From: Octopus sinensis | Taxonomy: Eukaryota | Direction: 5' to 3' | Assembly (NCBI RefSeq): GCF_006345805.1 | Contig: NC_043000.1 | Coordinates: 131,874,001-131,938,000, forward strand | DNA: 64,000 bases | Shown: positions 1,940-26,779 of the stretch, piece after piece | Position numbering within the stretch: position 1 is the stretch's first letter | Layout of the letters: the number at the start of each line of letters is the position of its first letter | Made by a program: the position numbers and the translations under genes | The notes under the pieces: model-generated | What the model was told of the DNA's origin: nothing | The model's input: only the letters and a program-made list of their open reading frames with translations | Database searches by the model: none

Positions 1940-2059
1940 ATGCTTACAGCACCTAGGGTTCCCAAGCGGTCACCCATCTAAGTACTAACTAGGCTCGATG
2001 TTGCTTAACTTCGGTGATCAGACGAGAACCGGTGCTTTCAACGTGATATGGCCGTAAGC
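1940..2059 (-). rRNA. RNA5S: 5S rRNA gene (dispersed copy 1; U40 variant)
   Basis: Reverse complement GCTTACGGCCATATCACGTTGAAAGCACCGGTTCTCGTCTGATC...GGTGCTGTAAGC; helix I pairs fully, box A/box C motifs, oligo-T downstream. Confidence 0.97.
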
Positions 2060-2081
2060 AGCAGAATAGTAAATTTTAAGA

Positions 2082-2096
2082 TATTTATTCTATAAA
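2082..2096 (-). promoter_or_regulatory. Conserved TATA-like upstream element of 5S genes (TTTATAGAATAAATA, about -37 to -23)
   Basis: Same or near-identical motif at about the same distance upstream of all 13 dispersed copies and most array units, while flanks diverge. Confidence 0.65.
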
Positions 2097-2739
2097 CAGA
2101 TACTAAAACTCTTTTTCATGATAAATTCATTTCTTAAAAATCTATATACAACTTTAGACGTTCTTTCGTTAAAAGTCTATGACGTCGTGAGTGGGCTTGT
2201 GACATTGTGTTTCATCTGCTTCACAGTGCTGATAAGTTAAACACTCGCACCAACACTTAATCGTTATTGACGTTGTATACCAGTTGAACTTCATTTTCAT
2301 TACGACTTATGAACTTTTCCTATTTTCCTTCCCACCAGCAAGTCACACTATTACGTTTCTTACACGTTCATCTTTACTACAAAACATTTCACATTTCGTG
2401 CGCCAGCGCTTTACAGGGAATGTTGTTATATGCCGGTGTGATGATGTGTTACGATCACTATATCAATAGGGTCGGATATAAAATAGCACCATTTATTTGC
2501 CGACTATACCCAGCATTCTGATATTCAGTAGTTGATAGCAGAAATAGAAGCGGGTACTTGTTCACTATTTTGTGCACGAAATGTGAAATGTTTTCTGATA
2601 AAGATCGACGTGTAAAAAACTTAGAATCCTGACTTATTAGTGTTGTATGGGTGCTAGGTAAATAAAAACTGACAAGCAATCGGTTTTGCTCTTCATTTAT
2701 TGCTTTCACTTGTATGTATGTATATCTGTACGTGAGTGA

Positions 2740-2741
<2 letters not shown>

Positions 2742-2772
<31 letters not shown>
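2742..2772. repeat. (GT)n microsatellite
   Basis: Direct reading. Confidence 0.9.
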
Positions 2773-3040
2773 CCACTGTTGAAGTTGCTCGTGCATATGA
2801 AAAACAATTAAAGTGTGTATATGAGTGTGTGCGCGACCGCGTGCTTCACTTCTCAGCTGCAAAAGAAATAAACATTTAAGAAATAAAGGATCTTTTCGTT
2901 TTCAACGGCAGGTCAAGAAATTAATTTTTAGGGAAAAGATCCGAAATGTTTTATGTGTCCGAAATTTGAAAGTGTTTGGTTACAAAAAAAAAAAACTCTC
3001 GATCTGCCGTTGAAAGGAAAGAGATCGGAAATAGAAATTC

Positions 3041-24710: not shown

Positions 24711-24939
24711 GAAATCACATCAAATCTGCACAAATGACCACCACCACCGCGATCACATACACCAATCATACACACACGTGTGTGTGTGTATATGTGGCTA
24801 TATGTCTGACTAATGTGTGTGTGTCTGTATTTATTGTATGTGTGTATAAGTAGTTATATGCTTATATTATCGATTATAGTAACATTTTTCTGTTGAAATC
24901 CGTTTTAAGGCGGTCAATAGTTTAATTAAAGATGTGTCT

Positions 24940-25007
<68 letters not shown>

Positions 25008-25146
25008 GTGTATACATATATATATATATATACACATGTGTATACATTACACATGAAATGTATTTATTTATAAACTTTAAACTGAACTTCAATTGTTTTA
25101 TGTGATCGCGGTGGTATGGTCATTTGTGCAGATTTGGTGTGATTTC
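24711..25146. mobile_element. MITE-like element with ~50-bp TIRs around a microsatellite-rich core
   Basis: GAAATCACATCAAATCTGCACAAATGACC...CCGCGATCACATA vs TATGTGATCGCGG...GGTCATTTGTGCAGATTTGGTGTGATTTC; (TA)n at 24948-25004. Confidence 0.5.
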
Positions 25147-25785
25147 TTTTTTAAAAACAATAATGAATAATGCAAGAATATATTTATTTATAAAGTTTAA
25201 ACAGAACATGGAATGAAATGTATTTATTTATAAACTTTAAACTGAACTTCCATTGTTTTATAAACGTAACAGCGTGGTGGTACGTAAATAAACGGCGTAA
25301 ATTAACGAAGGTATAAACCTGACGGAAATACACGAAGTTGACTACTTTCACTTCTGACAGTGCCAGCCAATGAATGGAGACCAAAACCGATTGATTGCCA
25401 GGAAAAGTACAGAAGTCGCAATAAAAATGAAGTTTCGGTAGTAGTATATGACAACAATGATGACTAAGCGTCGGTGCGAGTAGCACTAACGCGACAACTA
25501 TTTCCCTTCCTACATACAGTTATAGAATTAGCAAATCGTTTAAGTGTTGCAGAGAATGTTTTGTAGTATTTGTTCCGCTCCCCTCTGGTTGATGGTCGTA
25601 CAACAATCGTGACATGAAAGGTACTTTCAATATCTTCACGGGAAAACCCTTAATAAATTTAAGCGGACGTTAAACTACGGGTGCTCTCTGTATTCAATAA
25701 TGAAGATAAAATGAATCCGCTGTGTTTTAATACTTCTTATGGTCAAATTACAATTCGTTTAAATTAAAAAGAAAAACAGAAGGGA

Positions 25786-25905
25786 ATGCTTACAGCACCT
25801 AGGTTTCCCAAGCGGTCACCCATCTAAGTACTAACTAGGCTCGATGTTGCTTAACTTCGGTGATCGGACGAGAACCGGTGCTTTCAACGTGATATGGCCG
25901 TAAGC
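25786..25905 (-). rRNA. RNA5S: 5S rRNA gene (copy 12; A102)
   Basis: Full 5S core. Confidence 0.96.
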
Positions 25906-26659
25906 TTTAAAGTGATAAATTTTAATATATTTATTCTATAAACTGATACTAAACCATTTTCATTTTTACGAACACATTTTTCGTTCTTTTAGTTCATATA
26001 TAATTTGGCAATCTTTCGGTAAAAATACATTATCTTTCATCTTCACAGTGCCAACTTAGCGATCTCGGTAGAAAAAAGCATTATATTTCTCCTTCACAGT
26101 ACTGAACAGTCAAACACTCGCACCAACACTTACTCATCGTTTACGTCATATACTACTACCTAAGCATTGCCGAGCACTTTAACTTAGATTTTATTTACTT
26201 AGCACCCATTATACTACGTTCCTTACACGTTCATTTTTACCAGAAAACATTTCACATTTCGTGCGCCAGTGTTTTACAGGGAATGTTGTTATGACGTTAT
26301 ACGATCGCTACATCAATTGGGTCGGAAAAAAATACCACCAATTATTTACAGATTATACCCAGGATTCTGACATTCAGTAGTTGATGACATAAATAGAGGC
26401 GAAAGTGTTCACTACTTTGTGCACGAAATGTGAAATGTCTTCTGGCAAAGATCAACGTGTAAAGGACGTAGTATCATAACTTAATGATGTATAGCGGGTG
26501 CTAGATAAATAAAGACTAGTAATCAATAGGTTTTGGTCTCTATTCATTGTCTTTTATTTGTATGTATGTGCATAAATTAAAAGAAATCAAATATTCTGAA
26601 GAACAAAATGCTTTAGTATCACAGTGTAGAATAAATATATTAAAATTTACCACTTTGAT

Positions 26660-26779
26660 GCTTACGGCCATATCACGTTGAAAGCACCGGTTCTCGTCCG
26701 ATCACCGAAGTTAAGCAACATCGAGCCTAGTTAGTACTTAGATGGGTGACCGCTTGGGAACCCTAGGTGCTGTAAGCAT
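26660..26779 (+). rRNA. RNA5S: 5S rRNA gene (copy 13)
   Basis: Full 5S core; proximal upstream identical to array type (…TTAAAATTTACCACTTTGAT). Confidence 0.97.

Follow-up and report, generated by a model that had tools for sequence, protein, structure and literature searches.

An alternating chain of 5S rRNA genes beside a tandem array in Octopus sinensis, probably shaped by nested inverted duplications

The 5S ribosomal DNA (rDNA) is a classic textbook case of how head-to-tail arrays evolve in concert. In Octopus sinensis, an array of this kind lies beside a cluster of 13 full-length genes for 5S ribosomal RNA (rRNA) whose orientation changes almost gene by gene. We describe this locus in a window (the whole 64,000-nucleotide stretch analysed) that covers forward-strand positions 131.874-131.938 Mb of CM016862.1, a chromosome of 164.8 Mb in GCA_006345805.1, an assembly presumably made from PacBio long reads and Hi-C data. 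The alternation is probably a by-product of nested inverted duplications and of recombination anchored in the genes, and in that case the cluster would be the flank of an ordinary 5S locus, rearranged and slow to evolve.

Inverted 5S genes have been described in other animals. In Oikopleura dioica, as summarised in PMC8008620, 22 of the 27 5S copies occur in "inverted tandem repeats" with a spliced-leader (SL) gene (Ganot et al. 2004, cited in PMC8008620). The octopus locus resembles that of Oikopleura in that animal 5S genes stand as inverted pairs and not head-to-tail. However, the Oikopleura pairs are, according to the same summary, tied to the SL RNA gene and found on all chromosomes, whereas the octopus spacers hold no other RNA gene and the octopus pairs follow one another within a single 25-kb cluster, next to a classical tandem array. 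No SL or other small RNA gene was found in the window (Rfam, E <= 1): 5S is the sole Rfam family that reaches its gathering score there, the matches added at E <= 1 are at chance level, and no tRNA gene was found. In the pike Esox lucius, long reads show both inverted and direct 5S rDNA with variably homogenised spacer families, and large palindromes have been proposed to help spread the 5S rDNA (PMC5437419). In that species whole multi-kb tandem blocks are inverted (4% of reads; PMC5437419), whereas in the octopus it is the single genes that switch orientation. For tilapia, too, an inverted 5S gene is on record (Martins et al. 2002, as cited in PMC3215682).

Birth-and-death evolution under purifying selection is the standard model of 5S rDNA in the accounts given by PMC3215682 and PMC3123226, and the octopus locus shares with the systems described there the conserved genes, the diverged spacers, the presence of several spacer classes and the occasional inverted copies. 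The studies concerned used polymerase chain reaction (PCR) with outward-facing primers, by which head-to-tail units only can be recovered; the chain of divergent pairs and the nested palindromes of the octopus are visible only in a long-read assembly. The Tribolium 5S paper has nothing on inversions, and in a literature search of incomplete coverage we found no description of a gene-by-gene alternating 5S chain beside a tandem array, nor of the 5S organisation of any cephalopod. A 5S sequence string gave no matches in the literature, and a 57-base 5S pattern gave none in metagenome contigs. Inverted and dispersed 5S genes that evolve by birth-and-death are already known; it is the alternating chain beside an array that seems to be new.

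The 5S genes were called with Rfam cmscan (RF00001, gathering score 38), and all spacers were taken from the Rfam coordinates. The whole window holds 69 such genes, 13 in the cluster (1941-26778) and 56 in the array (Table 1). The cluster genes read -,+,-,+,-,+,-,+,-,-,+,-,+, exactly the number and strand order given in an initial annotation made from the sequence. Divergent neighbours are separated by 5588, 654, 551, 585, 662 and 754 bp, convergent neighbours by 4276, 224, 8058, 447 and 1104 bp, and the single tandem pair, gene 9 to gene 10, by 388 bp. The initial annotation had listed the same five short divergent spacers; its closest convergent distance of 222 bp is recovered if genes are counted as 120 nt, and the 218 bp that it gave for another convergent spacer after removal of a miniature inverted-repeat transposable element (MITE) agrees with the ~220 bp left here, the MITE being real. 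The insertion that it placed between genes 1 and 2 is also present, but measures ~4.3 kb and not ~4.5 kb, and the spacer without it is about 1.27 kb instead of the ~1.1 kb claimed. Nearly every other detail was right, although nothing was said of the adjacent 56-gene tandem array or of the published inverted 5S precedents.

Orientation switches at 11 of the 12 cluster junctions (p ~0.003 under random orientation). Because the copies are not independent and comprise about seven independent junctions, this pattern is less surprising than it appears; when only the non-duplicated junction classes are counted, ~7/7 switch (p ~0.008). The array starts 9 kb from the cluster, carries the same upstream box and has, over 36005-63650, the features of a classical array, namely one orientation, a ~500-bp period and homogenised spacers: block A (41 units) is 99.1% identical and block B (58-63.6 kb) 95.5% identical. 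An assembly gap (a run of N) lies inside it at 57733-57832. The cluster is not organised in this way, given its strand switches, its spacers of 224-8058 bp and a spacer identity of 75-92%. The two sets differ in the gene as well, since U39 (GTTCGATC) is found in 56/56 array genes and in 0/13 cluster genes (p = 2.6e-14), the latter having C39 in 13/13. Position 39 is a conserved C, located in loop C, in the Rfam consensus, and the cluster genes are hence canonical and the array genes derived.

All 13 cluster genes appear intact. They score 109.2-114.4 bits and cover model positions 1-120, and no truncated 5S fragments were found in 1-36 kb, even at E <= 1. Only positions 24, 25, 40, 55, 81 and 102 vary among the 13; A25, U40, G81 and A102, which had been named earlier as markers, are true variable sites, and C24 and G55 add to them. 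The internal control region of 5S genes, as defined in Xenopus, comprises box A, the intermediate element and box C (about +50 to +97). Positions 50-97 of the octopus cluster genes are constant and match the Rfam consensus, except for G55 in gene 6 and G81 in gene 3. Mean pairwise identity is 98.6% in the gene, 86.6% at -47..-12, 60% at -11..-1 and 47% at -70..-48, and ATAGAATAAATA is unvarying within the conserved block -47..-12. A TATA-like element, TATAGAATAAATA (<=1 mismatch), stands at -35..-23 in 13/13 cluster genes, and the window contains 59 matches to this motif against 0.43 expected. T-runs begin within 25 bp past the 3' end of every cluster gene. Because gene, upstream box and terminator are conserved while the flanks have decayed, we infer that these are functional, independently transcribed RNA polymerase III (Pol III) genes; to judge from the sequence, they are probably autonomous type-1 units, none of which shares parts with its pair partner. 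The gene bodies are probably kept constant by purifying selection and conversion.

The TATA-like element had been noted earlier at both ends of the shared spacers, and the box does lie upstream of all 13 genes. The pairs had also been taken to be a bidirectional Pol III module, and one may go further and suppose that the divergent pair is under selection as a unit: its shared spacer would coordinate or insulate the transcription of both genes, and its advantage would have led to its amplification. Such selection would agree with the nearly perfect alternation, the conserved box at both ends of every divergent spacer, the narrow range of 551-754 bp in 5/6 divergent spacers and the integrity of all genes. 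However, each gene has its own box, with the paired boxes roughly 480-690 bp apart, and conservation is limited to -47..-12 of each gene, ending at about -47 on each side, beyond which the spacer centres are unrelated. The spacers form three classes without a common centre, one of them array-derived and the others mosaics of two upstream types (U1 and U2, see below), and their lengths of 551-754 bp contrast with the ~1270 bp of pair 1/2, a spacer that moreover tolerates a 4.3-kb transposon. The array only 9 kb away is head-to-tail and has the same upstream box, and 5S genes, having internal promoters, are well transcribed from head-to-tail arrays. A shared bidirectional promoter is not what these spacers look like, and selection for the pair as a unit is distinctly unlikely.

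The cluster was instead built by at least two inverted segmental duplications, P1 and P2 (Table 1), as the initial annotation had suggested when it spoke of amplification by inverted duplication. The P1 arms align end to end in inverted order, genes 3, 4, 5, 6 corresponding to 11, 10, (9), 8, 7; the P2 arms are also colinear and inverted, and are 82-88% identical. In both cases the arms are colinear reverse complements over non-genic sequence, and even when the gene cores are masked the spacers remain extensively homologous. A third copy is provided by the flank of gene 2 (7560-8561), direct relative to the gene 13 arm. Substitution divergence between the P1 arms is 7/476 (1.5%) in genes versus 108/1261 (8.6%) in spacers (Fisher p = 4e-9), and the proximal 47 bp are 16% diverged versus 7% in the spacer cores. 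Two insertions are private to the P1 right arm, a 507-bp array unit and the 216-bp MITE at 22949-23164.

Such differences between the arms also bear on the question of whether the inversions are an assembly artefact, arising from chimeric or foldback long reads or from a mis-joined repeat. It is true that this repeat-rich region adjoins a tandem array with a gap (57733-57832). The paired arms are, however, 7-25% diverged and set apart by many indels, the MITE and the 507-bp unit, the last two of which rule out a simple foldback; 1-57732 contains no run of N, and every junction has unique flanking sequence. The sole near-perfect inverted repeat (99.3%) consists of the ends of a transposon with an intact transposase open reading frame (ORF) and matching 9-bp flanks. 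Mis-assembly or foldback had been thought less likely before, and we agree, because the arms are diverged and carry private insertions and the cluster has no gap; the inversions are very probably genuine. The arrangement was further supposed to be prone to hairpins or cruciforms, which holds only in a trivial sense. As a single strand, 12768-13324 (the region of genes 4 and 5) folds into a ~180-bp stem (-208 kcal/mol, z = -29.6), but the loops are >=180 nt and the arms 6-15% diverged, and long loops together with diverged arms disfavour cruciform extrusion.

Dispersal by a mobile element, whether as a 5S-derived short interspersed nuclear element (SINE), as retroposed transcripts or through capture by a DNA transposon, might be considered for a cluster so rich in transposons (a Merlin element, its MITE and an element with long terminal inverted repeats, TIRs) and with copies in both orientations. 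Nevertheless, all copies are full length, unlike those of a SINE or retropseudogene, and the promoter block plus several hundred bp of both flanks were duplicated along with the genes, which excludes retroposition of transcripts. The homology boundaries vary by copy, and the modules have no bounding terminal repeats, target-site duplications or poly-A tails. We regard this origin as very improbable.

A more serious proposal is palindromic amplification in a few steps, by breakage-fusion-bridge cycles or by inverted triplication of the origin-dependent inverted-repeat amplification (ODIRA) or duplication-inverted triplication-duplication (DUP-TRP/INV-DUP) type. It would specify how the inverted duplications came about and need not compete with the history favoured here. 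The long downstream module called B below occurs direct-inverted-direct at genes 2 (+), 7 (-) and 13 (+), the hallmark of inverted triplication; the palindromes overlap, since they share gene 7 and the P1 right arm lies for the most part centrally in P2; and the inverted 5S genes provide short inverted repeats of the sort needed by these models, of which ODIRA is described in PMC4689423. On the other hand, few of the junctions at gene-pair scale show mirror symmetry: in pairs 3/4 and 5/6 the partners carry different upstream types past about -45 to -90, and a single B flank makes up the spacer from gene 4 to gene 5. The arms, too, are kilobases apart, and with identities of 75% to 93% the copies are of very different ages. 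Since junctions of this scale are no mirror images, a simple breakage-fusion-bridge ladder was rejected. Amplification in a few steps is possible, although we think it rather unlikely.

The flanks of the cluster genes form a mosaic. Upstream, type U1 is found at genes 1, 3, 6, 7, 11 and 12, type U2 at genes 4 and 10, and the array type T at genes 5, 8 and 9; downstream, type B is found at genes 2, 3, 4, 6, 7, 9, 12 and 13 and in a ghost module at the array edge, and the array type A at genes 10 and 1. The combinations U1/B, U1/A, U2/B, U2/A and T/B all occur, and this would place the recombination breakpoints in or beside the conserved gene core. For comparison with the array, one 505-bp array unit was aligned to the cluster. 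The unit at 23395-23901 is 99.0% identical to it (505/507 bp), with a spacer only 2 substitutions from the array consensus, and its insertion by copying most likely accounts for the sole head-to-tail (-,-) junction. The upstream regions of genes 5 and 8 correspond to array spacer positions 189-505 at 83-85% identity, and gene 5 looks like an old array-type unit that lies inverted between genes 4 and 6. Gene 13 matches the array type exactly at -33..-1, and the proximal promoters of genes 1 and 5 are the same over 50 bp although their distal flanks are unrelated. The array-type unit, the gene 13 promoter and the promoter shared by genes 1 and 5 indicate that short-tract exchange occurs; the last of these, together with the 16% versus 7% divergence in P1, suggests short conversion tracts over the gene and proximal promoter. 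The claim that the cluster escapes homogenisation is hence partly right. It agrees with the U39 split and with spacers that are 75-92% identical against 99.1% within the array, but the 99% array unit, the 33 bp of gene 13 and the promoter of genes 1 and 5 are traces of exchange.

From these patterns we infer the order of events and the recombination mechanisms behind the nested inverted duplications. The history would involve two kinds of module, the dispersed U1-gene-B and the array T-gene-A. An old array-type unit (gene 5) would have come to lie inverted between genes 4 and 6, and segments of 1-4 genes would then have been duplicated in inverted orientation at least twice, P2 being the older and P1 the younger event. 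Recombination and short-tract conversion may have reshuffled the flanks, using the near-identical cores (about -47 to +140) as anchors, and one array unit was probably copied into the counterpart of gene 4, creating the only -,- junction. Since a divergent pair reads -,+ either way round, later duplication or inversion of whole pairs keeps the alternation.

Several points weigh against this history. The arrangement comes from one assembly, and the function of the genes is judged from conservation. The order of events is only partly resolved, as gene 3 has a B flank and gene 11, its P1 counterpart, does not. The spacer from gene 9 to gene 10 is of array type, but neither gene has U39 (gene 10 is C39 C40 and gene 9 is C39 U40); a very recent U39 sweep, a tract that ended inside the genes or another donor array are possible reasons. 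The ~7/7 independent junctions are somewhat more regular than an unselected history requires. Finally, base 25 tracks the strand, with G in 6/7 minus-strand genes and A in 5/6 plus-strand genes (Fisher p = 0.03), a correlation that simple inheritance through P1 does not predict. A25/G25 was rejected as an inherited marker of the P1 arms and does not track this duplication, because 3/4 arm counterparts differ there; the site may be a tolerated, recurrently changing one, or a product of conversion.

Xenopus and zebrafish have oocyte or maternal 5S genes distinct from somatic ones. The octopus likewise has two 5S sequence classes in separate genomic arrangements (the U39 array and the C39 cluster), one large and homogeneous and the other a small set of other copies. 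In contrast to those dual systems, the octopus classes are known from sequence, differ by one diagnostic base (U39 versus C39) and lie 9 kb apart. It is conceivable but doubtful that they are functionally distinct, with a homogenised U39 array and an inversion-protected, dispersed C39 set that are differently expressed. If this were so, the alternating orientation would shield the C39 set from unequal crossing-over with the array, and the two classes might be used differently, for instance in germline versus soma, as in Xenopus and zebrafish.

Table 1. Coordinates, marker bases and flanks of the 5S genes and associated features (window positions).
Feature	Position	Strand	Marker bases	Description
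Gene 1, 5S rRNA	1941..2059	-	G25, U40	Rfam 112.3 bits, model 1-120; U1 upstream; array type downstream for ~70-90 bp
Gene 2, 5S rRNA	7648..7766	+	A25	Rfam 114.4 bits; long B downstream flank
Gene 3, 5S rRNA	12043..12161	-	G25, G81	Flanks U1/B; outer gene of P1 left arm
Gene 4, 5S rRNA	12816..12934	+	A25	Flanks U2/B
Gene 5, 5S rRNA	13159..13277	-	G25	Upstream matches array spacer positions 189-496 at 83%; inverted between genes 4 and 6
Gene 6, 5S rRNA	13829..13947	+	A25, G55, A102	Rfam 109.2 bits; inner gene of P1 left arm
Gene 7, 5S rRNA	22006..22124	-	A25, U102	Flanks U1/long B; in P1 right and P2 left arms
Gene 8, 5S rRNA	22710..22828	+	A25	Counterpart of gene 5
Gene 9, 5S rRNA	23276..23394	-	G25, U40	Upstream 99.6% array type; downstream B
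Gene 10, 5S rRNA	23783..23901	-	G25	Upstream U2; downstream 99.5% array type; counterpart of gene 4
Gene 11, 5S rRNA	24564..24682	+	C24, A25	Counterpart of gene 3
Gene 12, 5S rRNA	25787..25905	-	G25, A102	Flanks U1/B
Gene 13, 5S rRNA	26660..26778	+	G25	Long B flank, which is the P2 right arm
P1 left arm	12012..13997			2.0 kb, genes 3-6; global alignment with reverse complement of 21959-24713
P1 right arm	21959..24713			Inverted copy with genes 7, 8, (9), 10, 11; lengthened by MITE and array unit
P2 left arm	18677..22205			Gene 7 and ~3.3 kb of downstream flank; inverted matches to 34533-26577
P2 right arm	26577..34533			Gene 13 and downstream flank, expanded by insertions
Array-type repeat unit	23395..23901	-		Gene 10 and 388-bp spacer to gene 9; absent from P1 left arm
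Head-to-tail 5S rDNA array	36005..63650	-	U39 in all	56 genes, period 479-507 bp (Rfam)
Ghost 5S module	35368..35730	-		Array edge; B downstream flank, T-run, box remnant TTTAGAATAAATA at 35715-35727
Merlin/IS1595-type DNA transposon	3041/3045..7345	-		~4.3 kb, in divergent spacer 1/2; Pfam PF12762, E = 3.5e-20
MITE	22949..23164			216 bp, 23-bp terminal inverted repeats
Long-TIR element	14220..18559			4.3 kb, with inverted ends of 350 bp (92% alike); occupies over half of the 8 kb from gene 6 to gene 7

The Merlin element between genes 1 and 2 has inverted arms of ~1.27 kb that are 99.3% alike over 970 bp, and an intact transposase ORF of 291 aa (4368-5243) whose nearest named relatives are Octopus proteins; from the intact ORF and the near-identical arms the element is probably recent or still active. 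A 9-bp TAGAAATTC is found outside both of its ends, abutting the right terminal repeat and lying 4 bp from the left one. The terminal repeat of the MITE, GTAC[G/T]ACTTGAGAACAGTGGTCC, is similar to the Merlin ends, its flanking repeat is about A[A/G]CTACGGG, and the MITE is absent from the paralogous spacer between genes 4 and 5. The terminal repeats of the two elements seem to be related (GGTAC...GTGGTCC(C)GG), and each element has 4 extra bp between terminal and flanking repeat at one end only. The long-TIR element carries three transposon-like ORFs on the minus strand (14763-17001), for which no Pfam family was found except a weak CXC-domain match; no clear target-site duplication was found for it, and a tRNA-like match within it at 18077-18145 stays below threshold (27.4 bits; gathering score 29). 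A further repeat is common to the class I divergent spacer (12297-12686) and the convergent spacer from gene 11 to gene 12 (25184-25486), where it gives rise to spurious ORFs that resemble each other (LAPTPTHHSSRILLPK... and LAPTLSHHCCHILLPK...), and is probably an interspersed element common in the genome.

Some variation was also observed in and around the array. The right sub-block at 56427-63650 has a 495-bp period, is less homogeneous and includes many genes with U17; degenerate copies and the assembly gap lie between it and the 99.1%-identical block. The box at -35..-23 is absent in 14/55 array units within 36503-57522 (for instance those starting at 36503, 37986, 40473 and 45968). In units 36503 and 40473, which were read directly, it was lost by a ~21-bp deletion, and most box-less units are short (479-488 bp); such units, scattered through the array, may be transcribed more weakly. 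In the ghost module at 35368-35730, the 5S gene itself has been deleted (aligned to the gene 3 module; no 5S match at E <= 1), and the deletion site carries a 30-bp local duplication. The transposon-rich sequence between cluster and array contains local direct duplications in 32115-32952 and 32944-34472, both very recent (356 bp at 99.7% and 215 bp at 98.6%).

On the left, no more 5S genes were found in the 7.5 kb beyond gene 1. A multi-finger C2H2 zinc-finger ORF lies on the minus strand ~2 kb past gene 1 (L002 15084-16157, about -913 to 160 of the window) and forms the left boundary of the 5S locus. The gene called within it (L002 15210-16157) has a product of 232 aa; a search for its orthologs was dominated by generic zinc-finger proteins, the best octopus match being 48% identical. 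The ORFs that cross the 5S genes are <=36 aa long and without start codons, and none of 10 ORFs taken from spacers, B flank and array unit had a match in the protein collection.

The locus reveals no new transcription mechanism. Its significance comes partly from the way in which 5S genes are usually sampled, as surveys of molluscs and other invertebrates have mostly relied on outward-primer PCR, by which head-to-head and tail-to-tail copies are undetectable. Here a homogenised array is set beside intact inverted genes that have kept their own diagnostic base while their spacers drift. The locus is therefore a test case for how orientation limits homogenisation, for gene cores as recombination anchors, and for purifying selection and short-tract conversion as the forces that keep dispersed RNA genes identical. 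It also raises the question of whether the U39 variant of the array or the canonical C39 sequence of the cluster supplies the octopus ribosome.

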